Positions 3,105 to 56,227 of a stretch of 64,000 nucleotides of DNA are shown here, piece by piece (position 1 is the stretch's first letter; each line of letters begins with the position of its first letter). The DNA is taken from sequence record LR745206.1; one strand, given 5' to 3'. The position numbers and the translations under genes are program-made. The notes beneath the pieces are model-generated. The model made no database searches and was not told the origin of the DNA. It worked only from the letters and a program-made list of their open reading frames with translations.

Positions 3105-3555
3105 TATTAGAGTAAAACTTAGAAGTGAGGTAAGTAGTAAATTAGCATTTGTTAAATTAATTAAAGAATGTACTAATCTTGGTCTTAAAGACGCTAAATG
3201 GACTTGTGATACCCTTCATGAAAACCTCAGAAAAGGTTTGGATAAATCGATTGATATAGAGTTAATTGGTGGTGTAGATGGTCTTGGAAATTCTTATCTA
3301 AAAGTATTCCAACAAGGTATTTTAGATATAGGAGTTAATGCTTTTGTTAATGGTGGTGTAGCATGGGAGAGAAATTTTAAAATGTTATCAATCGGTATAG
3401 GAGAAAAGAAAGATTATTCTGATTTTATTTCTGAATATGTTAATACTGTTGATTTGGAACATGGTAAAGATATTATTAATTTGTTGATAGATAAATTATC
3501 ACAAAATGATTTAGAGGAAATATTTGAAATTATAAGTAAAGAAATTAAGATATGA
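3091..3555 (+). CDS. Protein with ribosomal L7/L12 C-terminal-like segment
   Basis: KLAFVKLIKECTNLGLKDAK resembles the L7/L12 CTD K-x-x-VIK-x-x-R-x-x-TGLGLKEAK signature. Confidence 0.5.
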   Translation: MKRNNIRVKLRSEVSSKLAFVKLIKECTNLGLKDAKWTCDTLHENLRKGLDKSIDIELIGGVDGLGNSYLKVFQQGILDIGVNAFVNGGVAWERNFKMLSIGIGEKKDYSDFISEYVNTVDLEHGKDIINLLIDKLSQNDLEEIFEIISKEIKI

Positions 3556-5717: not shown

Positions 5718-6809
5718 TTATTCTAATGTTAAGAATATTTTTCTACTCATTCTATCAACAGAAAGTACCTTAACACTTACTGTATCACCTGATGAGAACT
5801 TCTTGTTCAACTTAGCCATCTCAGATGTGTGTATGAGACCAACAGTCTCTTCATCTAAGTTAACAAGTGTTCCAAACTGTTTAACATCTTTAATAGTTCC
5901 TTCTATCAATTGACCATTTTTGATAGTGTCCCAAAGAGTCTCTCTCAAAATTTGTGTTAGAATAATCTTATTCTTGATTATTTCTTTAACATAAAATTCA
6001 ATTTGGAATCCAGGATCAATTTGTGATATTTTATCCTGCCACTCTGGGTTTATATTAGCCTTATGAATCATACCAGTTAAACATTCGTTGAATTCAACAA
6101 ATACTCCAAATGGGGCGGTTCCTGTTACGGTTCCTGTGTATGATTCATCAAAAACCAATTCTTTGATAGCTGATGGTATCAAGCTTTGTAGATACTTACG
6201 TCTGCTCACAATGTAAGTCCCTTCTCGTTCAGCATAAGATTCTATCATAACTTGGAAAGTGTCTCCAACGATAGAATTTGGGTCAGATAACTTGTTAATA
6301 CCCGCTAATGTGTTTGGCATAAATGCCGGAAGAACAACACTACCATGTAACAAATCAACATCATATCCAGCTGGATTTGTCGATTTTATACAAGCTTTAA
6401 CTGATTCACCTTCTTTCAAAGATTTAAGTTTTATATGAGCCATACTTTCGTATAGGGCTGATAAACTTCCTTTGATGAAAAAGTCATCATGATTTATATT
6501 AACTATTAATACTTCAATCATGTCACCTTTTTCAGCATTTACCAAGTATTTAGATTCTCCAGGTTTAACATCTATTCTGATGTCATCTTTAAATCCTCTT
6601 ACTGAGAAAATGTATTGGTCAGATAATATTCCTTGGAATTCAGCTTCTACCACTTGACCAGTTTTTGGCATTTCTACCATAGTTGATTCATATAGTTTAC
6701 ATAAATCATCATACTCTTTATTCTTTACTCTTTTTCCATTGAATTTATCATCTTCAAATAATAAATCAAAGTCTGGGTTACCCATTTGTTTTGTTTCTGT
6801 CATATTCAT
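5718..6809 (-). CDS. Ribosomal protein S1-like multi-S1-domain protein
   Basis: Repeated S1 motifs (GTVTGTAPFGVFVEF..GMIH; GTIKDVKQFGTLVNL..GLIHTSE; YIVSRRKYL). Confidence 0.85.
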   Translation of the reverse strand: MNMTETKQMGNPDFDLLFEDDKFNGKRVKNKEYDDLCKLYESTMVEMPKTGQVVEAEFQGILSDQYIFSVRGFKDDIRIDVKPGESKYLVNAEKGDMIEVLIVNINHDDFFIKGSLSALYESMAHIKLKSLKEGESVKACIKSTNPAGYDVDLLHGSVVLPAFMPNTLAGINKLSDPNSIVGDTFQVMIESYAEREGTYIVSRRKYLQSLIPSAIKELVFDESYTGTVTGTAPFGVFVEFNECLTGMIHKANINPEWQDKISQIDPGFQIEFYVKEIIKNKIILTQILRETLWDTIKNGQLIEGTIKDVKQFGTLVNLDEETVGLIHTSEMAKLNKKFSSGDTVSVKVLSVDRMSRKIFLTLE

Positions 6810-29754: not shown

Positions 29755-29759
29755 AAATT

Positions 29760-31483: not shown

Positions 31484-31696
31484 ATGAGTAAACTTAGAAA
31501 TGGTGGTATGATAACCGAAAGAGATTATACTAATAAAACTTTAGAAGAAGCAGTAGAATATGCTGAGGCTGGTGGATTCGTAACAAGAATTGTTGAAAAA
31601 GACGGTAAACCAATTAGTTTAGATATGTCTGTTAGAGCAGATAGAATAAATTTTAGAGTCGTTAATGATAGAGTAACTGCCGCTTTTGGAGGCTAA
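31484..31696 (+). CDS. Small protein resembling I78/I13 protease-inhibitor fold
   Basis: LDMSVRADRINFRVVNDRVTAAFGG resembles the T-M-D-x-x-x-D-R-x-N loop. Confidence 0.45.
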   Translation: MSKLRNGGMITERDYTNKTLEEAVEYAEAGGFVTRIVEKDGKPISLDMSVRADRINFRVVNDRVTAAFGG

Positions 31697-31698
31697 TT

Positions 31699-32133
31699 AT
31701 GGATAAGATAAACAAAATACAAGCATATCATTCCTTTACAGTTATGCCAAAAGATTGTAATTTCAATAAACGAAAGAACAGTGATCTTAATGATACATTA
31801 TTTGGTGGTAAGTTAATGTATGAGATGGACTATGCCGGTGCTAAAATAGCAAGAAGAGCTACTTATGGTATAGATATCGATATGATAGTTACCGCATCAA
31901 CTGATAGAATTAATTTTGAAAAACCAGCTTTTATTGGTGATTTAATAACTATGGAAGCTACTATAAAAGCTTTTGGTAGATCATCTATACAAATAAGGAT
32001 AAAGGTTAGACGAGAGGATTTAAAGGGTGATGTAGAACAAATTTGCTCAGCTAATATGACATTTGTTACTATAAAGGATGGTAAACCGATACAACATGGA
32101 TTATCTTTTGATAAATTAAATTTGGAGAATTAA
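31699..32133 (+). CDS. Acyl-CoA thioesterase (hotdog fold)
   Basis: VMPKDCN..TLFGGKLM, VTASTDRINFEKPAFIGD, GRSS, MTFVTI. Confidence 0.88.
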   Translation: MDKINKIQAYHSFTVMPKDCNFNKRKNSDLNDTLFGGKLMYEMDYAGAKIARRATYGIDIDMIVTASTDRINFEKPAFIGDLITMEATIKAFGRSSIQIRIKVRREDLKGDVEQICSANMTFVTIKDGKPIQHGLSFDKLNLEN

Positions 32134-32154
32134 ATATATATAACTATATTTGTA

Positions 32155-32265
32155 TCATATTGATGGTTGTGTGAGTTGCGTAGTGACAAGAACACAGGCT
32201 ATACAACATAGGTTCACAGTTCAAAGATTCAATAATCTACTTCTTAGAGCGACCTTTCCCACAAT
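32155..32265 (+). ncRNA. Possible small structured RNA
   Basis: Own TAnnTTTG box at 32145, no ORF, end-to-end pairing TTGTG/CACAA and GTTGC/GCGAC. Confidence 0.3.
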
Positions 32266-32379
32266 ATTTTATAAATAAATTAAAATAAATTAGGTAGATA
32301 TAAAACTTTTATCTATATTTGTATAAAATAATAACAAAAACGAAAAAAGGGACAATTCCTTTTTAATATATAAGAAATA

Positions 32380-32475
32380 ATGACAACAAATAGTACACAT
32401 AAGAATTTTAGTAAATCGCATAAATGGTTTAGCAACCAATCGTTCGGTACTGAAAGTGTATTGTCATTAAATTAA
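32380..32475 (+). CDS. Putative attenuator leader peptide (His/Phe/Trp) MTTNSTHKNFSKSHKWFSNQSFGTESVLSLN
   Basis: 2 His, 3 Phe, 1 Trp; followed by a terminator and His/Phe/Trp tRNAs. Confidence 0.75.
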   Translation: MTTNSTHKNFSKSHKWFSNQSFGTESVLSLN

Positions 32476-32508
32476 TGTAGAAGTTAAATTAATAAACAAC
32501 AATATTTC

Positions 32509-32538
32509 AATCCGAACTCAAAAGTTCGGATTTTTTTT
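32509..32538 (+). terminator. Attenuator terminator, His/Phe/Trp tRNA block
   Basis: AATCCGAAC-TCAAAA-GTTCGGATT plus T-tract. Confidence 0.85.
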
Positions 32539-32552
32539 GTTTAAAAATATAT

Positions 32553-32627
32553 GGTGTGTGAAGGGAAAATGGTTGACCCGTCACTCTGTGAAAGTGAAGA
32601 TAGCGGGATCGTTACCCGTCATACACC
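32553..32627 (+). tRNA. tRNA-His (GTG)
   Basis: TCACT-CT-GTG-AA-AGTGA; encoded G-1 and C73; T-loop ATCGTTA. Confidence 0.85.
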
Positions 32628-32634
32628 CAAATAA

Positions 32635-32707
32635 GGAACCTAAGCTAATCAGGTGAAAGCACTGGACTGAAAATCCAGGGAGCCCGGATCGTTACCGGGA
32701 GGTTCCA
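32635..32707 (+). tRNA. tRNA-Phe (GAA)
   Basis: CTGGA-CT-GAA-AA-TCCAG; acceptor GGAACCT/AGGTTCC. Confidence 0.88.
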
Positions 32708-32714
32708 CAAACAT

Positions 32715-32788
32715 GGTGAATGTAGCTCAATTGGGAGAGCGTCTGGTTGTGAACCAGAAGGTAGTCGGATCAAAACCGACCTTTCACA
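32715..32788 (+). tRNA. tRNA-His (GTG), atypical
   Basis: TCTGG-TT-GTG-AA-CCAGA; T-loop ATCAAAA, A at position 73. Confidence 0.75.
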
Positions 32789-32794
32789 CAAAAT

Positions 32795-32866
32795 GGAGGC
32801 TTAGCTGAGACGGTTTAGCGTTGGTGTGAAGTACCAAAGAGGTCGGTTCGATTCCGGCAGTCTCCA
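32795..32866 (+). tRNA. tRNA-Phe (GAA)
   Basis: TTGGT-GT-GAA-GT-ACCAA; canonical T arm. Confidence 0.8.
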
Positions 32867-32881
32867 CAAAATAACTAACAC

Positions 32882-32953
32882 GCGGATGAGCGTAGGTTTA
32901 GTCGGCAGGATTCCAACCCCTCGCCCGTTAGAGTTCGAATCTCTACATCCGCG
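32882..32953 (+). tRNA. Degenerate tRNA-like gene (CCA/Trp or TCC/Gly register)
   Basis: Perfect acceptor GCGGATG/CATCCGC and T arm TAGAG-TTCGAAT-CTCTA; D and anticodon stems poorly paired. Confidence 0.45.
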
Positions 32954-32959
32954 CAAATA

Positions 32960-33027
32960 ACAAGTAGTGACTAAGAGGGTTACTTCGATTTTAACGACAA
33001 ACAATACTCTCTTTATTTTTCTCTTGT
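32960..33027 (+). other. Hairpin element homologous to the flanks of the permuted tRNA-Cys
   Basis: Shares CAAG-TAGT...GAG...GTTACTTCGA.T...CGAC...AATAC..CTC with 59031-59158; ACAAG/CTTGT closing pair. Confidence 0.5.
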
Positions 33028-33032
33028 TAAAC

Positions 33033-33103
33033 ACGGGTATGGTGAAATGGTATCATTACGGTCTCCAAAACCGCAGTTCTGAGTTCGAATCTTGGTACCC
33101 GTG
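33033..33103 (+). tRNA. tRNA-Trp (CCA)
   Basis: ACGGT-CT-CCA-AA-ACCGC; G73. Confidence 0.88.
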
Positions 33104-33135
33104 CAAATTATTAAAAATTGAAAAAGGAAGAAATT

Positions 33136-33165
33136 ATGAAAACTAAATTAAAATATAAACGATAG
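33136..33165 (+). CDS. Putative leader peptide (Lys) MKTKLKYKR
   Basis: 4 AAA Lys codons in 9; same GAAGAAATTATGAAAACTA 5' context as the leader at 33630; followed by four tRNA-Lys. Confidence 0.7.
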   Translation: MKTKLKYKR

Positions 33166-33195
33166 GGTTAGTAACCAATTGAAAGTTACTAACCC
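33165..33195 (+). promoter_or_regulatory. 11-bp hairpin starting at the Lys leader stop codon
   Basis: GGGTTAGTAAC-CAATTGAAA-GTTACTAACCC; no long T-tract. Confidence 0.7.
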
Positions 33196-33208
33196 ATTTA
33201 GAAAAAAT

Positions 33209-33281
33209 GCGTTCGTAGCTCAATTGGTAGAGCTTCCGGCTTTTAACCGGAAGGTTGTGGGTTCGATTCCCTCCGGGCGTA
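33209..33281 (+). tRNA. tRNA-Lys (TTT)
   Basis: TCCGG-CT-TTT-AA-CCGGA. Confidence 0.88.
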
Positions 33282-33292
33282 CTAGTAAATAT

Positions 33293-33378
33293 CCGTCCGT
33301 GGGTGAATGGCTGAAACCACCAGACTTTTAATCTGACGAGAGAGATCTCCATTGTAGGTTCGAATCCTACCGGGCGGA
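33293..33378 (+). tRNA. tRNA-Lys (TTT), long variable arm
   Basis: CCAGA-CT-TTT-AA-TCTGA; extended variable region. Confidence 0.75.
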
Positions 33379-33382
33379 CAAG

Positions 33383-33465
33383 GCACCTGTCGCTTAGCGG
33401 CTATAGCAACTGGCTTTTAACCAGTCGAGTTTTCTCAATCGTGGGTTCGAGTCCCACCAGGTGCA
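33383..33465 (+). tRNA. tRNA-Lys (TTT), long variable arm
   Basis: ACTGG-CT-TTT-AA-CCAGT; variable CGAGTTTTCTCAATC. Confidence 0.8.
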
Positions 33466-33471
33466 CAAAAT

Positions 33472-33557
33472 GACTCCGTTCCCGTAGTTGGCCGAACGGT
33501 CCAGACTCTTAATCTGGCGACGAAAGTCCACCGTGGGTTCGAATCCCACCGGGGTCA
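33472..33557 (+). tRNA. tRNA-Lys (CTT), long variable arm
   Basis: CCAGA-CT-CTT-AA-TCTGG; variable GAC-GAAA-GTC hairpin. Confidence 0.8.
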
Positions 33558-33629
33558 CAAGAATAAAAGTTAAAAAATTAGGAATTGACAAAAACAAACA
33601 TTACATTTGTAATATATAAAGAAGAAATT

Positions 33630-33704
33630 ATGAAAACTATTAACAACACATCGAAAAGTTCTAGTCGCTCATCAAGTATGAGTGAGATTCGATTGTATTC
33701 GTAA
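33630..33704 (+). CDS. Putative attenuator leader peptide (Ser/Arg) MKTINNTSKSSSRSSSMSEIRLYS
   Basis: 9 Ser + 2 Arg in 24 aa; own TACATTTG promoter; terminator then Arg/Ser tRNAs. Confidence 0.82.
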   Translation: MKTINNTSKSSSRSSSMSEIRLYS

Positions 33705-33726
33705 TAGTCAAGTATAGATATTTATG

Positions 33727-33757
33727 AAACCTCGAATCTAACGATTTGAGGTTTTTT
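33727..33757 (+). terminator. Attenuator terminator, Ser/Arg tRNA block
   Basis: AAACCTCGAATC-TAAC-GATTTGAGGTTT plus T-tract. Confidence 0.85.
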
Positions 33758-33767
33758 GTTTTAAAAT

Positions 33768-33839
33768 GGTTCCATCGTTCAACGGATAGGACACTCGGCT
33801 ACGAACCGAGAAATTGGGGTTCGAATCCCTATGGAATCA
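33768..33839 (+). tRNA. tRNA-Arg (ACG)
   Basis: CTCGG-CT-ACG-AA-CCGAG. Confidence 0.9.
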
Positions 33840-33844
33840 CAAAT

Positions 33845-33931
33845 GGAAGAGTAATTAAGCTGGCGCTTGACCTAGTCTTGAAAACTAGTGGTACTGAAAG
33901 GTATGGGGATCGATACCTCACTCTTCCGCCA
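33845..33931 (+). tRNA. tRNA-Ser (TGA)
   Basis: CTAGT-CT-TGA-AA-ACTAG; long variable arm, G73, encoded CCA. Confidence 0.85.
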
Positions 33932-33935
33932 AATT

Positions 33936-34022
33936 GGAAAAATAAGAGCAGTTGGTCTAAGCTCGGCGGTTTTGAAAACCGTAGGCCCTAGTGGTGTGTG
34001 AGTTCGAGTCTCACTTTTTCCG
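33936..34022 (+). tRNA. tRNA-Ser (TGA)
   Basis: GCGGT-TT-TGA-AA-ACCGT; long variable arm, G73. Confidence 0.85.
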
Positions 34023-34031
34023 CAAAAATTT

Positions 34032-34118
34032 GGAGAGCAATCTAATCTGGTGATTAGGGCCGCCTGCTAAGCGTGTCGCACCTTCGGGTGTGGGGTTCAA
34101 TTCCTCTGTTCTCCGCCA
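34032..34118 (+). tRNA. tRNA-Ser (GCT)
   Basis: CGC-CT-GCT-AA-GCG; variable GCACC-TTCG-GGTGT; encoded CCA. Confidence 0.8.
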
Positions 34119-34121
34119 AAT

Positions 34122-34205
34122 GGAAGGCAATCTAACTTGGTAGTTAGCCACGCTTGGAAAGCGTCGGGCACCTTCGGGTGTGGGTTTCGATTACTCTGTC
34201 TTCCG
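34122..34205 (+). tRNA. tRNA-Ser (GGA)
   Basis: ACGC-TT-GGA-AA-GCGT; same variable arm as the preceding gene. Confidence 0.8.
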
Positions 34206-34210
34206 CAAAT

Positions 34211-34291
34211 GCCTCTGTATCGTCCTCGTCTTCGAAACGAGAGTAGCGTAACGGATAATGAAAAATGTAGGTTCGAATCCTACCAGGGGTA
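34211..34291 (+). tRNA. Rearranged tRNA-Arg (TCG)-like gene: no D arm before the anticodon, D-arm-like hairpin after it
   Basis: GCCTCTG/CAGGGGT acceptor, CTCGT-CT-TCG-AA-ACGAG, CGT-AACGGATA-ATG, GTAGG-TTCGAAT-CCTAC. Confidence 0.6.
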
Positions 34292-34295
34292 CAAA

Positions 34296-34598
34296 ATGAA
34301 TGAAATAATTATAGGAGATTGTCCGATTTGTGATCGTGAAATGTGGAGAGGTAGCTTTGTCGATAGGCATCACTTTTACCCTAAGTGTAAAGGTGGTAAA
34401 GAAACAGAGTATCTACATAAAGTGTGTCACCGAAAGATACATTCTGTTTTTACAGAAAATGAATTGGCAAAAGAATATAATAATGCTGAGATTGTTAAAT
34501 CTCATCCAGAAATAATTAAATTCATAAAATGGGTATCTAAGAAAGATCCTGATTTTTATGATAGTACAGTAACACATAATAGGAAAAGGAGAAGGTAA
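34296..34598 (+). CDS. HNH-family nuclease-like protein
   Basis: CPIC...DRHHFYPKCKGG...LHKVCHRKIH; start ATG 34296 (the track extension overlaps tRNAs). Confidence 0.8.
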   Translation: MNEIIIGDCPICDREMWRGSFVDRHHFYPKCKGGKETEYLHKVCHRKIHSVFTENELAKEYNNAEIVKSHPEIIKFIKWVSKKDPDFYDSTVTHNRKRRR

Positions 34599-34906
34599 TG
34601 GAAAGAGAAGAAATTTACAGAAGACATATAAGGTATGGTACATCGTCTGAGGGTACACTTATGTTGATGCAAAGTTTATTAACTGAAATATTGAGACCGG
34701 AGTATAGAAAAATTTGGGTTCAAGGTTCCTCAAGAGGTAGTCTATGTTTTACTATATTTGATAGAAACTCATATACAATGAGATTTTTCAACACTGGTGG
34801 ACTAAGACAATTCAGGGTGGATGCTCCATTGGAAGAAGAGATAGTTGCTATGGAAAGATTAATAGAGATATTCCGACAAGGTGTTCTATCTGAATTTATA
34901 GATTAG
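34598..34906 (+). CDS. Hypothetical protein
   Basis: 102 aa, coupled to the previous stop. Confidence 0.6.
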   Translation: MEREEIYRRHIRYGTSSEGTLMLMQSLLTEILRPEYRKIWVQGSSRGSLCFTIFDRNSYTMRFFNTGGLRQFRVDAPLEEEIVAMERLIEIFRQGVLSEFID

Positions 34907-35084
34907 GAGAGAGGATATGTGATATATAAGATATGAAGAAAGTATTTAAATTTATCACATATCCTTTAAGTAGATATATAAAAAATAGAATTAAATCTAG
35001 ATTAAATTGGTAATAATGAAAATTATTCCTATATTTGTAATTAATAATTAAAACATAAACGAAAAATATAATATATAAATAATA

Positions 35085-35129
35085 ATGAGAGCTTTACATA
35101 CATACAAAATTACGATTGACTTGGGTTAA
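35085..35129 (+). CDS. Putative attenuator leader peptide MRALHTYKITIDLG (His)
   Basis: Single His codon; 3' end complementary to the terminator 5' arm; upstream of HisRS operon. Confidence 0.55.
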   Translation: MRALHTYKITIDLG

Positions 35130-35154
35130 CCCAGCTGTATTTTATATGTATATA

Positions 35155-35185
35155 GCCCAGTCAATCTTTTGACTGGGTTTTTTTA
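35155..35185 (+). terminator. Attenuator terminator before HisRS operon
   Basis: GCCCAGTCAA-TCTTT-TTGACTGGGT plus T-tract. Confidence 0.85.
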
Positions 35186-35207
35186 TGCAAAAAAATAAAG
35201 TAAAGTT

Positions 35208-35411
35208 ATGAAAACAAAAGATGATAGCTGGTACGAGCAAAAAGTTGAAAGTATCAGAAAGAGGAAAAGAAAACTCCATCTTATCCAAGAGCCAAAGGTT
35301 AGAAAGAGAATTAAGGCGGATTTAAAACGTGAGCAAAGAGGGGCTAAAAGATCTTCTAAAAACTCATTAAAGAAATGGATGGAAAACGAAATAAATAAAT
35401 TAAACGATTAA
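35208..35411 (+). CDS. Small basic helical protein
   Basis: 67 aa Lys/Arg-rich ORF. Confidence 0.6.
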   Translation: MKTKDDSWYEQKVESIRKRKRKLHLIQEPKVRKRIKADLKREQRGAKRSSKNSLKKWMENEINKLND

Positions 35412-35424
35412 AAAAATTATAAAA

Positions 35425-36060
35425 ATGGAAATTAAAATTGATAGTACTTATAAAGGAACAAGAATCCTTTTTGCGGAAACAGCTAAGAGTAAACGTGTTT
35501 TACTAAATGATATGATTGAAATACTTGAATCTTATGGATATCAAGAAATAATGATACCAATCATACAAAAACAAGAAACTTTCGCTTCAAAGGTGGGTGA
35601 TGAAAATCAAAACATGATGTATAACTTTAAAGATAGAGGTAATCGTGATTTATGTTTATCACCAGAGTACACAGCAATTGTTCAACAATTAGCCTCTGAT
35701 AGAATGAAGTTTGATAAAGATGTTAAAATGTTCTACATAGGAGAATGTTTTAGAGGAGAAAATACACAAGCTGGAAGATGGAGACAATTCACACAATTTG
35801 GTGTTGAAGTCTTAAATCCATCTAAAGACTACTCTGATGAAATGATAGAAATTGCTACTAAACTAATTGAATTAGTTACAAAAAATTATGAATTAAACAC
35901 AGACGCAACAAGAGGTCTTGACTACTACAATGGTGGAAAGGGATTTGAAATTGCTTGTCCTGAGTTGGGAGCTGCTAAACAAATTTGTGGGGGAGGTTCT
36001 TATGAAGGAGGTATTGGTTTTGCCGTTGGTGTGGACAGATTACTATTATGCAACAGATAA
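35425..36060 (+). CDS. hisS: Miniature histidyl-tRNA synthetase (catalytic core only)
   Basis: YKGTR, LCLSPEYTA, FRGENTQAGRWRQFTQFGVE, RGLDYY, GGGSY, GFAVGVDR; ends with no anticodon-binding domain. Confidence 0.85.
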   Translation: MEIKIDSTYKGTRILFAETAKSKRVLLNDMIEILESYGYQEIMIPIIQKQETFASKVGDENQNMMYNFKDRGNRDLCLSPEYTAIVQQLASDRMKFDKDVKMFYIGECFRGENTQAGRWRQFTQFGVEVLNPSKDYSDEMIEIATKLIELVTKNYELNTDATRGLDYYNGGKGFEIACPELGAAKQICGGGSYEGGIGFAVGVDRLLLCNR

Positions 36061-36323
36061 GATATTTAAATTTTAATAAAATAGGTGATAGATTTGCATC
36101 AGTTGGTGATAATACCACTGATGTAAAAATAACATTTAAAACAGGAAATGAATTGAGTAATTTCATTAACAGCAATGAATCTATATTTAAGAATATGGAT
36201 TATAAATGTGACACCTCACTATTTAAAATAGTGAAGATTGAAAAAATAAAACACTTTTCTATAATAGCAAAGATAGAAAGAATAACTCTAAGAGAGTATA
36301 ACCTAGAAAGATTATTAACATGA
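36048..36323 (+). CDS. Hypothetical protein
   Basis: 91 aa; C-terminal REYNLERLL. Confidence 0.6.
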   Translation: MQQIRYLNFNKIGDRFASVGDNTTDVKITFKTGNELSNFINSNESIFKNMDYKCDTSLFKIVKIEKIKHFSIIAKIERITLREYNLERLLT

Positions 36324-37033
36324 AAACAAAACAAAGAATAAAAAATTTAAGAAGTATAGCTCCTGATTATCCGAGGATACCTCATTTTTCAAAAGCTATA
36401 TCAAATATGACTCACGATGATATATTAACTGAGTCGAATATACAATTCCCCTTATCTGGTTGGGTACAGGAGAAAGTTGATGGTGCTAATATGGGTATAT
36501 CCTGGACAAGTGGTCCACTTATTAGAAACAGAAATAATATTTTAAAGAAAGGATATATTGATACTGATACACCAGCTAAATTACAATTCAGGCCTGCTTG
36601 GAATTGGATACATGAACATGGACAAGATATTAGAAATATTTCTAAAGAGTTGATGTCTCCTGTGACAATTTATGGTGAGTGGATGTTAGCAAAACATTCA
36701 TTGGAATATGACAAATTAACTGATTGGTTTTTAGCTTATGATATTTATTTATCAGAAGAAAGAAGATTTTTGGCTCCTGATATTTTTGAGGAATTAATGT
36801 CTAAGACTAATATCAAATATATCAAACCAAAGAAGATAATATTTAATAATTTAGATGAGGTTGTTAGATATTCTGAGAAAAATTCAGATTTTAGAAATGG
36901 TAAACAAGAGGGTATCGTTATTAAAATATCTGATGGTAGTTCAGTAACAGATTCTTATAAAGTAGTTAATAAACACTTTATAAGAAGAGAAGATTTTAAT
37001 AAGGAATTAATAAAAAATAAGATTAAGAAATAA
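36320..37033 (+). CDS. ATP-dependent RNA ligase family protein
   Basis: Motif I QEKVDGAN, YGEW, AYDI, EGIVIK. Confidence 0.8.
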   Translation: MKTKQRIKNLRSIAPDYPRIPHFSKAISNMTHDDILTESNIQFPLSGWVQEKVDGANMGISWTSGPLIRNRNNILKKGYIDTDTPAKLQFRPAWNWIHEHGQDIRNISKELMSPVTIYGEWMLAKHSLEYDKLTDWFLAYDIYLSEERRFLAPDIFEELMSKTNIKYIKPKKIIFNNLDEVVRYSEKNSDFRNGKQEGIVIKISDGSSVTDSYKVVNKHFIRREDFNKELIKNKIKK

Positions 37034-54824: not shown

Positions 54825-54869
54825 AAAGGGAGACAACCTTTTTAATATATACACGTATAATAAAGACAT

Positions 54870-54941
54870 CGCGGGGTAGAGCAGTGGCAGCTCGCAAGGC
54901 TCATAACCTTGAGGTCGTTGGTTCGAATCCAGCCCCCGCTA
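54870..54941 (+). tRNA. tRNA-fMet (CAT), initiator type
   Basis: CGCGGGG 5' end with unpaired C1, CAAGG-CT-CAT-AA-CCTTG; no leader or terminator upstream. Confidence 0.85.
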
Positions 54942-55028: not shown

Positions 55029-55115
55029 ATGAACACAATTACTAACATAGCGTCTTACGAATCTTATTATGAAGAGGGTAACCTAGTCAGACGAAATAAC
55101 TATGTCGTAATGTAA
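55029..55115 (+). CDS. Putative attenuator leader peptide (Tyr/Glu) MNTITNIASYESYYEEGNLVRRNNYVVM
   Basis: YESYYEE core (4 Tyr, 3 Glu in total); terminator then Tyr/Glu tRNAs. Confidence 0.82.
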   Translation: MNTITNIASYESYYEEGNLVRRNNYVVM

Positions 55116-55139
55116 GTAATTATATAAACGAATATTTAT

Positions 55140-55173
55140 ACCCAGTCTGACAAATGTTAGACTGGGTTTTTTT
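55140..55173 (+). terminator. Attenuator terminator, Tyr/Glu tRNA block
   Basis: ACCCAGTCTGAC-AAAT-GTTAGACTGGGT plus T-tract. Confidence 0.85.
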
Positions 55174-55187
55174 ATGTCAAAAAATTC

Positions 55188-55498: not shown

Positions 55499-55523
55499 CA
55501 AACAGACATCAACGTAATGTCTG

Positions 55524-55647
55524 GGTGATGTAGAGCAATTGGTAGCTCATCTGCTAGTTAAATGATGGAATAATCATAATCCTGAAGCTATTATAAAATA
55601 GGCGACACGGTTGGTTCTTGGTGTAGGTTCGAGTCCTATCATCACTA
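55524..55647 (+). ncRNA. tRNA-like RNA with a large insertion replacing the anticodon arm
   Basis: Acceptor GGTGATG/CATCACT, D arm GAGC-AATTGGTA-GCTC, T arm GTAGG-TTCGAGT-CCTAT; about 70 nt insert with small hairpins. Confidence 0.6.
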
Positions 55648-55653
55648 ATACCT

Positions 55654-55736
55654 GGGATGTTATACCGTAGGGGTAGCGGGACAGACTGTAAATCTGTTAT
55701 CTTCGGATTCGGGTGGTTCGACTCCATCACGTCCCA
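55654..55736 (+). tRNA. tRNA-Tyr (GTA)
   Basis: ACAGA-CT-GTA-AA-TCTGT; long variable arm. Confidence 0.85.
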
Positions 55737-56080: not shown

Positions 56081-56164
56081 ATGAAAAATTTAAATAACAT
56101 ATCAATAGCAGTAATCGGGAACGGCGCGGGAGCGATACGTGAGTGGCTGAGTTATGGTATTTAA
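56081..56164 (+). CDS. Putative attenuator leader peptide (Ile/Gly/Ala) MKNLNNISIAVIGNGAGAIREWLSYGI
   Basis: 5 Ile (3 ATA), 4 Gly, 3 Ala; terminator then Ile/Gly/Ala tRNAs, GlyRS and AlaRS. Confidence 0.82.
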   Translation: MKNLNNISIAVIGNGAGAIREWLSYGI

Positions 56165-56183
56165 TTAAATTAAAATATTTCAA

Positions 56184-56215
56184 AAACCCAGTCACGAAAA
56201 TGACTGGGTTTTTTT
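56184..56215 (+). terminator. Attenuator terminator, Ile/Gly/Ala block
   Basis: AAACCCAGTCA-CGAAAA-TGACTGGGTTT plus T-tract. Confidence 0.85.
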
Positions 56216-56227
56216 GTTTTTAAAAAC

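Follow-up and report, generated by a model that had tools for sequence, protein, structure and literature searches.

A lysine-codon micro-leader that may gate folding of the first tRNA-Lys in huge phages

The window analysed here, a stretch of 64,000 nucleotides, corresponds to positions 310001-374000 of LR745206.1, the sequence of an uncultured 634,780-bp phage. Within it, a nine-codon, lysine-rich ORF and a hairpin touching its stop codon lie directly in front of four tRNA-Lys genes, three of which have long variable arms, a feature that the earlier note on this locus did not mention. The arrangement is as follows.

32314-32540 (+): upstream transcription unit that feeds the module, comprising the TATATTTG box (32314-32321), the His/Phe/Trp leader ORF (32380-32475) and a T-tract terminator (32509-32540)
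33105-33135 (+): A-rich 5' region between tRNA-Trp (33033-33104) and the micro-ORF, unpaired in all predicted folds and without a promoter box
33136-33165 (+): micro-ORF MKTKLKYKR*, with TAG stop at 33163-33165, the proposed Lys-codon sensor
33165-33175 (+): 5' arm of the hairpin (GGGTTAGTAAC)
33176-33195 (+): loop (CAATTGAAA) and 3' arm (GTTACTAACCC) of the hairpin, the proposed switching strand
33196-33208 (+): 13-nt A-rich spacer (ATTTAGAAAAAAT) with no T tract
33209-33282 (+): tRNA-Lys(UUU) #1, 74 nt, of canonical length (68.2 bits)
33293-33379 (+): tRNA-Lys(UUU) #2, 87 nt, with a long variable arm
33383-33466 (+): tRNA-Lys(UUU) #3, 84 nt, with a long variable arm
33472-33558 (+): tRNA-Lys(CUU) #4, 87 nt, with a long variable arm

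The earlier note had described an AAA-rich micro-leader followed by a hairpin without a T tract, lacking a TAnnTTTG box of its own and sharing its first 19 nt with the context of the Ser leader, and this observation is confirmed. The ORF starts at ATG 33136 and has AAA at codons 2, 4, 6 and 8, that is, at 4 of its 8 post-start codons. AAA is the commonest codon in the window, at 62 per 1000, but of 778 ATG-ORFs of 6-15 codons in the window only 2 have 4 or more AAA codons. The hairpin at 33165-33195 begins on the G of TAG, has 11 bp and a predicted stability of -15.8 kcal/mol, with a z-score of -6.3 against dinucleotide shuffles. It is the only strong intergenic hairpin in the window without a T tract, and a terminator scan, which requires at least 5 T in 8 nt within 0-2 nt of the stem, does not call it on the + strand.

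No TAnnTTTG occurs on the + strand between the boxes at 32314-32321 and 33602-33609, and none was found within 300 nt upstream of the module in 17 of 19 relatives, which supports the note's view that the leader is nested without a promoter box of its own. A sigma-70-type match at 33179-33208 is one of 14 found against 9.2 +/- 3.1 in shuffles and is therefore not meaningful. The 19-mer GAAGAAATTATGAAAACTA occurs exactly twice in the window, at 33127 and 33621. The note took this identity to suggest duplication of a leader cassette, which is not supported: the identity is not shared by any relative, and its 13-nt core AAATTATGAAAAC also precedes an ordinary gene at 29755, so that it looks like a favoured start context. 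An Rfam scan of 31500-36500 at E<=1 returned only tRNAs and terminator-driven noise, with no known cis-regulator.

To examine whether the module could have arisen by chance, we searched for it elsewhere. It recurs in more than 20 huge-phage loci, 8 of which were found without using the ORF as bait. All 4 hits to a strict ORF pattern in viral contigs lie just 5' of tRNA-Lys, as do 13 of 120 hits to a loose pattern in metagenomes. In contrast, in 185,579 bacterial and archaeal genomes the strict pattern gave no hits, and none of the 69 loose-pattern hits lies near any tRNA. Every locus found without the ORF as bait carries the module; these were found by blastn (locus L001), by a pattern for the long-arm tRNAs (L003, L006 and L008) and by a pattern for tRNA #1 (8 of 8, including L129, L131 and L132). 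In all 19 loci tabulated, the first downstream gene is tRNA-Lys(UUU), and among 105 tRNA-upstream gaps in related loci the ORF-stop-hairpin architecture occurs only before Lys. The loci are phylogenetically related, so these counts overstate independence.

The ORF displays a coding signature. Its identity across loci is 0.81, compared with 0.43 for the upstream and 0.29 for the downstream flank, and ATG, reading frame, stop position and 3-nt periodic conservation are kept. Lys is retained at codons 2, 6 and 8 in all loci and at codon 4 in all but L132, and 31 of 32 Lys codons in the set found without the ORF as bait are AAA. Codon 9 varies synonymously (CGA, CGC, CGG, CGT, AGA). These data make it very improbable that the feature is non-functional or misread, whether as a chance ORF in an A-rich spacer, a decayed copy of a full attenuator or a minus-strand terminator whose T-rich tail happens to read as AAA codons. 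The scan does call the hairpin terminator-like on the minus strand, with the tail TATCGTTTAT, the complement of the ORF end; however, the T run there starts 6 nt after the stem, and no minus-strand gene runs into it. Decay is disfavoured by locus L005, which has a KKKK leader ORF with a terminator-like hairpin upstream as well as the micro-leader.

A further possibility, which we consider unlikely, is a processing or stability element without sensing, in which the hairpin merely protects the 3' end of the upstream RNA after RNase P cuts the tRNA, leaving a stable mini-mRNA whose basic peptide is the functional molecule. A hairpin after a stop codon and without a T tract would fit a 3' stabiliser, and Thr/Ser at codon 3, Tyr at codon 7 and Arg at codon 9 are mostly kept, with synonymous codon changes. 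Nevertheless, codons 3, 5, 7 and 9 do vary (T/S/Y/K; L/R/Q/M/I; Y/R; R/Q/L), whereas Lys at codons 2, 6 and 8 does not, and the module is always fused to tRNA-Lys(UUU) and to no other gene. Nor does this reading explain the complementarity to the tRNA described below.

The hairpin is present in 20 of 20 loci, with predicted stabilities of -12.9 to -20.9 kcal/mol and z-scores from -2.4 to -6.7. It always starts -1 to +2 nt from the end of the stop codon, in at least 11 different stem sequences (11 different outer stems), and the last base of the stop covaries with its partner (TAG with C, TAA with T). No T tract follows it in any of the 20 loci, whereas the other terminators of these phages keep theirs. 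Display of a Lys codon in the hairpin loop, as in a T-box, was inconsistent across families when judged by eye.

Inspection of the sequence downstream of the hairpin revealed a second possible pairing. The loop and 3' arm are also complementary to the end of the spacer plus nt 1-16 of tRNA-Lys #1; in the window the helix is 33176-33199 : 33205-33226, in which nt 1-18 of the tRNA (33209-33226) are the captured strand and the last 4 nt of the spacer join across the RNase P cleavage site. Correspondingly, the 5' arm matches tRNA nt 1-11 (GCGTTCGTAGC) at 8 of 11 positions, and in L132 the 5' arm TTCCGTAG is an exact copy of tRNA nt 3-10. In the window, the alternative fold has a predicted stability of -15.3 kcal/mol, against -4.5 +/- 2.2 for shuffles (z -4.9, 0 of 1000). 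The unconstrained minimum free energy (MFE) structure of 33105-33282 is the alternative fold (-40.9), while the hairpin-enforced fold is at -40.4, so that the two are essentially isoenergetic.

When the stop and the following 12 nt were masked, all 20 loci paired 7-16 nt of loop and 3' arm with tRNA nt 1-20. This pairing is more stable than in shuffles in 16 of 20 loci (mean z -2.9), but not in the remaining 4. In a swap test over 13 stem families, own pairs averaged -11.0 and swapped pairs -7.2 kcal/mol, a difference reached in 0 of 20,000 permutations (p<5e-5). As controls, the 3' arms of four true terminators showed no such complementarity to their downstream tRNAs (z +0.6, -0.8, -0.3 and -1.7). 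Similarity of the 5' arm to the tRNA 5' end could in principle be a relic of a partial duplication. By eye, we found no suitable stem for a terminator formed by the alternative helix together with the U run of the tRNA D-loop or anticodon loop, and no T tract follows the alternative helix in any of the 20 loci.

The interpretation given in the earlier note, a variant mechanism that could be Rho-dependent or a processing or stability switch, is partly supported. The Lys-codon leader is real, conserved and tied to tRNA-Lys(UUU) genes, and it works differently from the T-tract attenuators around it; of the three mechanisms, the processing switch gains specific support from the complementarity between the 3' arm and the tRNA. 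Rho dependence is not supported, as the 104-nt leader (33105-33208) has 56 A, 8 C, 13 G and 27 T and hence no C-rich, G-poor loading site, and the downstream RNA is a structured tRNA; given the uncertain preference of Bacteroidetes Rho, this argument is not absolute. More broadly, the hairpin might be a pause or termination signal acting with Rho, another factor or a phage-modified polymerase, with the ribosome on the micro-ORF deciding whether it acts and the complementarity to the tRNA being secondary. Such attenuation without a U tract would suit a genome full of transcription attenuators and a module without its own promoter, for which read-through control would make sense, and in most loci the spacer of 12-15 nt would place a hairpin-stabilised pause at the tRNA start. 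We nonetheless regard it as unlikely, since, besides the composition of the leader and the missing T tract, it does not explain the covarying complementarity to the tRNA 5' strand.

We tentatively favour a different explanation, in which the module is a translated, Lys-codon-sensing leader that works through a three-strand RNA switch rather than a terminator. Strand 2 is the 5' arm of the hairpin, strand 3 the loop plus 3' arm, and strand 4 the end of the spacer plus nt 1-16 of the first tRNA-Lys(UUU). When tRNA-Lys(UUU) is scarce, the ribosome would stall on one of the AAA codons, and even at the last one (codon 8) its leading edge would stop just short of the hairpin. Pairing 2:3 would stay closed, strand 4 would be free, and the tRNA could fold and be cut by RNase P. 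When Lys decoding is efficient, the ribosome would run to the stop codon and unwind strand 2, and strand 3 would then pair with strand 4, burying the RNase P site and the acceptor and D-stem 5' strand, so that tRNA-Lys #1 would be held in a non-tRNA fold. The result would be negative feedback from AAA-decoding capacity onto maturation of the phage's own tRNA-Lys(UUU).

Sequence analysis establishes the conserved ORF, the stop-abutting hairpin with covariation, the absence of a T tract and the conserved, covarying 3:4 complementarity, whereas the remainder of the model is inferred, without experimental evidence for translation, for either fold or for any effect on tRNA yield: that the ORF is translated; the ribosome geometry, with a helicase boundary about +11 from the P site as in published ribosome work; that RNA polymerase pauses about 12-14 nt after the hairpin, so that the choice is made before strand 4 emerges; and that the 3:4 fold blocks maturation or leads to decay. 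Several features sit uneasily with the model. The 3:4 fold has no obvious irreversible step, and after the ribosome leaves, the 5' arm could displace it again, so the effect could be only a short delay. With the RNA truncated at tRNA nt 20, the alternative fold is already the MFE structure in most families without any ribosome, which makes the default co-transcriptional path uncertain. Moreover, the switch would control only the first of the four tRNAs. In favour of the model, every other tRNA cluster in the window has a cognate-codon leader with a canonical terminator, and ribosome-sensed control of tRNA genes is therefore the rule in this phage.

The opposite logic, positive coupling of the pyrE type, appears unlikely. 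Here the closed hairpin would stall or block polymerase, or block processing, until a ribosome that completes the ORF opens it; tRNA-Lys output would rise when translation works, and the Lys codons would only report translational competence. The stop codon does abut the hairpin, as in coupling-sensitive attenuators. However, this logic is opposite to that of the cognate-codon attenuators in the same genome, without a T tract there is nothing to antiterminate, and the predicted result of opening the hairpin is capture of the tRNA 5' strand, not its release.

tRNA genes are generally regarded as unregulated by their own decoding status, and known codon-sensing leaders control amino-acid biosynthesis or synthetase genes. 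It is possible, though on present evidence somewhat less likely than not, that the module represents a new class of cis-regulator, a translated micro-ORF that reads out the cell's capacity to decode one codon (AAA) and, through a bistable RNA whose switching strand can capture the 5' strand of the adjacent tRNA, directly gates folding and RNase P maturation of the cognate tRNA, which no known attenuator does. Huge phages would then couple the supply of a specific tRNA to how well its codon is being read, for lysine at the level of tRNA folding rather than transcription termination, possibly in response to host anticodon nucleases that deplete tRNA-Lys. This would add a regulatory layer to the conflict between phage tRNAs and anticodon nucleases, would help explain how phages carrying dozens of tRNAs manage them, and would provide a compact (about 75 nt), codon-specific sensor usable in synthetic biology. 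The module is short, sharply defined and testable in cell-free systems.

The proposed module can be compared with several known systems. That tRNA-Lys is a target of PrrC and PARIS, as the note stated, is established (PMC11464382, PMC12409363, PMC10264068), but for this phage the link remains inference. Phage tRNAs serve in counter-defence, T5 tRNA-Lys against PARIS AriB and mycobacteriophage tRNAs against PrrC-like nucleases, and here, too, tRNA-Lys isoacceptors occur in multiple variant copies and tRNA-Lys(UUU) is a known nuclease target (PMC11464382, PMC12409363, PMC10264068, PMC11555353). Those studies describe the tRNAs and not any cis-regulator of them, and full-text literature searches found no description of leader ORFs controlling phage tRNA genes, or of a folding switch. 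T-box riboswitches likewise exert cis-RNA control linked to the state of a specific tRNA, but they bind uncharged tRNA directly, have conserved specifier and T-box motifs and control synthetase and amino-acid genes; no T-box (RF00230) was found in the Rfam scan, and sensing here would go through the ribosome.

In translation attenuation of ermC, cat and cmlA, the position of the ribosome in a short leader also remodels an adjacent hairpin without any terminator, with accessibility of a downstream RNA segment as the output. There, the stall is drug- and peptide-dependent and the freed segment is a ribosome-binding site, whereas here the stall would be codon- and tRNA-dependent and the segment is a tRNA acceptor and D strand with its RNase P site; no ORF lies within 33196-33560 on the + strand apart from frames inside tRNAs. 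The pyrE and pyrBI coupling attenuators share a stop codon placed next to a hairpin, so that only a ribosome reaching the end of the ORF melts it, but those hairpins are U-tract terminators and sense polymerase-ribosome distance (UTP), and here melting is predicted to switch the tRNA off rather than on. Finally, leader-peptide transcription attenuators (trpL, hisL, pheL, leuL, thrL, and pheM of pheST) have a short ORF enriched in codons of the regulated pathway and mutually exclusive RNA pairings chosen by where the ribosome sits, with stalling on hungry codons giving the "on" fold and arrival at the stop the "off" fold. Cognate codon enrichment and, computationally, mutually exclusive pairings are found here as well. 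In contrast, the "off" fold is not an intrinsic terminator, its last strand is the 5' strand of the regulated tRNA itself, the regulated genes are tRNAs rather than biosynthetic or synthetase genes, and the ORF is only 9 codons long, with alternating rather than consecutive sensor codons.

All elements that the earlier note had described are present, so its observation is confirmed. The sequence belongs to LR745206.1, an uncultured phage of 634,780 bp (100% match; window position = record position minus 310,000), which is one of the very large metagenomic phage genomes predicted to infect Bacteroidetes, and the TAnnTTTG boxes in front of the leaders fit that. Standard stop codons are used: among ORFs of 120 aa or more, 50 end in TAA, 8 in TGA, and 2 in TAG. 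The lysine module is composed as follows:

33136-33165: ORF from ATG 33136 to TAG 33163-33165, reading MKTKLKYKR and a stop, with AAA at codons 2, 4, 6, and 8.
33165-33195: hairpin GGGTTAGTAAC / CAATTGAAA / GTTACTAACCC, 11 bp, -15.8 kcal/mol, z -6.3 against shuffles; its first base is the G of TAG.
The next 13 nt: ATTTAGAAAAAAT.
33209 onward: tRNA-Lys, followed by three further tRNA-Lys genes ending at 33558.

No TAnnTTTG lies on the + strand between 32321 and 33602, and the 19-mer shared with the Ser leader occurs at 33127 and 33621 only. Only 2 of 778 small ATG-ORFs in the window have 4 or more AAA codons, and among the strong intergenic hairpins of the window this is the only one without a T tract. 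Three of the four tRNA-Lys genes (33293-33379, 33383-33466, and 33472-33558) have class-II-like long variable arms (84-87 nt) with A73 and Lys anticodons, which is conserved in all relatives. The same scaffold occurs in cultured phages: Cellulophaga phage phi4:1 has an 89-nt tRNA-Asn(GUU), annotated tRNA-OTHER/pseudo, and Xanthomonas phage XacN1 has an 89-nt tRNA-Lys(CUU). Two related loci, L004 and L005, also carry long-arm tRNA-Met, and L005 carries long-arm tRNA-Asn. These may be nuclease-evading isodecoders, their charging identity being presumed.

Each other tRNA cluster in the window is preceded by a promoter box, a leader ORF rich in the cognate amino acids, and a canonical T-tract terminator. 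The leader ORFs, with the span of ORF plus terminator in parentheses, are:

32380-32475 (32380-32540): MTTNSTHKNFSKSHKWFSNQSF..., before His/Phe/His/Phe/Trp.
33631-33705 (33631-33762): ...SKSSSRSSSMSE..., before Arg and several Ser.
55029-55115 (55029-55175): ...SYESYYEE..., before Glu and Tyr.
56082-56165 (56082-56220): ...ISIAVIGNGAGAI..., before Ile/Gly/Met/Gly.

A Lys leader before Lys tRNAs therefore fits the rule, and the Lys case differs from the others by lacking a terminator. A relative (L002, LR756504.1) has a KKKK leader with antiterminator and terminator before its tRNA-Lys genes; in the same huge phage, the C-terminal end of a class II LysRS-like ORF, read from the sequence only, lies immediately before a tRNA-Lys(CUU) gene (6000-6433). 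Around these clusters we also observed the following:

35087-35186 and 35425-36060: a further short ORF (MRALHTYKITIDLG) with a T-tract terminator, upstream of ORFs that include a HisRS-like class II synthetase core fragment (Pfam PF13393, E 4e-23).
32880-32955: a tRNA-like sequence with a perfect T arm and acceptor stem between tRNA-Phe and tRNA-Trp, called by neither ARAGORN nor Rfam; similar sequences sit at the same place in L001 and L008 (related loci, see below).
33845-33927, 34031-34115, 34122-34204, and 34211-34291: three class II (Ser-type) tRNAs and one more tRNA missed by ARAGORN but detected by Rfam, the Ser-type ones as tRNA-Sec-like matches at 41-47 bits.
32347-32372 and 54826-54851: a shared motif, AAGGGA-N8-CCTTTTTAATATATA, between the TAnnTTTG box and the His/Phe/Trp leader ATG and again directly before tRNA-Met at 54870, which may be a second promoter type or a 5'-UTR element.
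55510-55654: tRNA-like 5' and 3' halves separated by about 70 nt inside the Glu/Tyr cluster, possibly a tRNA with an intron or insertion.

Comparison with other genomes shows that the module is real. A relative found by blastn (LR756502.1, locus L001) has MKTKRKYKR and a stop, a different-sequence hairpin touching the stop, a 14-nt spacer, and then tRNA-Lys. A strict ORF pattern gave 4 hits in viral contigs (385-482 kb contigs and one fragment), all just 5' of tRNA-Lys. A looser pattern gave at least 120 metagenome loci; of these 120, thirteen lie 5' of tRNA-Lys(UUU), and the rest are chance. In 185,579 bacterial and archaeal genomes the same loose pattern gave 69 hits, none near any tRNA, and the strict pattern gave none at all. 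Searches that did not use the ORF as bait, but the long-arm tRNA-Lys sequence or the first tRNA-Lys sequence, also found the module every time, and turned up variants that the ORF pattern would have missed: MKKKLKYKL (locus L008), MKSKLKYKR with one AAG (locus L131), and MKTEIKRKR (locus L132), each followed by a stop. The loci are all related by descent, so the counts overstate independence. In the unbiased set of 8 loci the ORF is 81% identical on average, whereas the 30 nt upstream are 43% identical and the 30 nt downstream (the hairpin) are 29% identical. Lys at codons 2, 6, and 8 is invariant; codons 3, 5, and 9 vary, codon 9 synonymously (CGA, CGC, CGG, CGT, AGA). Several loci extend the ORF in frame at the 5' end with further x-K repeats, for example MTKIKIKNMKSKRKYKR. 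In the 19 loci tabulated for context, the first downstream gene is tRNA-Lys(UUU) in all, and 17 of 19 have no TAnnTTTG within 300 nt upstream.

The coding-type conservation contradicts a chance ORF, a decayed attenuator, or a minus-strand terminator. These readings are also contradicted by L005 (IMGVR_UViG_3300028558_000016), in which a longer Lys leader with a KKKK run (MVVEIKKKKEYVQQNKQALTSISILMKR and a stop; reverse complement, about 3360-3460), with a long-range, terminator-like hairpin followed by GTTCTTTT, lies directly upstream of the micro-leader, so that two Lys-sensing elements sit in tandem. A possibly analogous leader, in a tractable system, occurs in a cultured jumbo phage, Xanthomonas phage XacN1 (AP018399.1), where a short ORF at 1066-1107, MNKPYYKRYYAKA and a stop (3 Lys and 4 Tyr codons), lies about 95 nt upstream of the cluster tRNA-Lys(CUU), tRNA-Lys(UUU), tRNA-Tyr, with hairpins lacking a T tract in between.

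All 20 loci analyzed have a stable hairpin, from -12.9 to -20.9 kcal/mol with z from -2.4 to -6.7, which starts between -1 and +2 nt relative to the end of the stop codon. There are 11 different outer stems, so the structure is conserved but the sequence is not. The last base of the stop codon is usually the first base of the stem and covaries with its partner, TAG pairing with C and TAA with T, which explains why this ORF uses the otherwise rare TAG. None of the hairpins is followed by a T tract, and the spacer to the tRNA is 3-15 nt, most often 12-15. Among 105 tRNA-upstream gaps in the related loci, the short-ORF-stop-hairpin-tRNA arrangement occurs only before tRNA-Lys. A stabilizer hairpin combined with a functional basic peptide does not explain this exclusive fusion to tRNA-Lys(UUU), nor the second helix described next.

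To mimic a terminating ribosome, we masked the stop codon plus 12 nt. In all 20 loci, the freed loop and 3' arm are then predicted to pair with the end of the spacer and nt 1-20 of the first tRNA-Lys, forming 7-16 pairs to the tRNA. This alternative fold is more stable than with a shuffled loop and arm in 16 of 20 loci (mean z -2.9). In the window, the pairs are:

CAATTGA (33176-33182) with TCAATTG (33220-33226).
GTTAC (33185-33189) with GTAGC (33215-33219).
AAC (33191-33193) with GTT (33211-33213).
CATTT (33195-33199) with AAATG (33205-33209).

The helix therefore crosses the RNase P site. Its energy is -15.3 kcal/mol, against -4.5 +/- 2.2 for shuffles (0 of 1000). For 33105-33282, the unconstrained MFE is this alternative fold (-40.9), while the centroid is the hairpin; with the hairpin enforced the energy is -40.4, so that the element is bistable as computed. 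Across 13 stem families, each switching strand fits its own spacer and tRNA junction better than those of other families (-11.0 against -7.2 kcal/mol, 0 of 20,000 permutations). It follows that the 5' arm resembles the tRNA 5' end, at 8 of 11 positions in the window and as an exact TTCCGTAG copy in L132. The register of this resemblance differs between families (about -4 to +7, +1 to +11, or +5 to +11 relative to the tRNA start), which argues for maintained complementarity rather than one old duplication. The 3' arms of four genuine terminators in the window show no such fit to their downstream tRNAs, and the switching strand fits tRNA-Lys #2 to #4 worse than #1. Factor-dependent termination or pausing at the hairpin remains possible; however, the leader is A-rich and C-poor, and this reading does not explain the second helix.

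These features suggest a mechanism. According to published ribosome work, the ribosome keeps mRNA single-stranded to about +11 from the first P-site nucleotide. With AAA codon 8 in the A site, that boundary would fall on the second base of the stop codon, one base before the stem, so that a ribosome stalled on any of the four AAA codons would leave the hairpin intact, whereas with the stop codon in the A site the outer 5-9 bp would be unwound. The design would thus separate two states, stalled on Lys and finished. In the first, the switching strand would be held by the 5' arm and the tRNA 5' strand would be free to form the acceptor and D stems; in the second, the switching strand would be free just as the tRNA 5' strand emerges, and could capture it. 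The conserved ORF, the hairpin, and the competing complementarity come from sequence comparison and computed folds, while the ribosome positions, a hairpin-stabilized polymerase pause 12-14 nt downstream, at the tRNA start, that would synchronize the choice (from spacer length only), and the fate of the trapped precursor (slow refolding, or 3'-exonucleolytic decay because the acceptor stem is missing) are inferred. Nothing irreversible is evident in the "off" fold. Moreover, with RNA truncated at tRNA nt 20, the alternative fold is already the MFE in most families without a ribosome, so that the kinetic order, with the hairpin presumed to form first, matters. Only the first tRNA would be affected. 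We read the arrangement as negative feedback, in which poor AAA decoding allows tRNA-Lys(UUU) #1 to mature and good decoding diverts it into a non-tRNA fold whose RNase P site is buried. Positive coupling of the pyrE type has the wrong sign relative to the neighboring attenuators, and there is no terminator to relieve.

The interpretation in the earlier note is supported in part. It had proposed a Lys-codon leader with a variant mechanism, either Rho-dependent or a processing or stability switch, and duplication of a leader cassette shared with the Ser leader. A Lys-codon leader with a variant, non-terminator mechanism is supported and a processing or folding switch is favored, while Rho dependence and cassette duplication are not supported. 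tRNA-Lys(UUU) is a documented target of PrrC and of PARIS AriB, and phage tRNA-Lys variants rescue infection (PMC11464382, PMC12409363, PMC10264068, PMC11555353); a response to such depletion is a reasonable, though hypothetical, biological rationale. Full-text literature searches, which did not cover all journals, found no report of leader ORFs controlling phage tRNA genes.

The module is not a T-box. In having no terminator it resembles ermC-type translation attenuation, but no ribosome-binding site is involved. It works, in the proposed reading, like a leader-peptide attenuator, with cognate codons, ribosome-selected alternative pairings, and the same regulatory sign. It differs from ribosome-mediated attenuation in that it lacks the defining terminator and regulates a tRNA, using the tRNA's own 5' strand as the last pairing partner, and it would possibly represent a new class if the tRNA-folding output holds.
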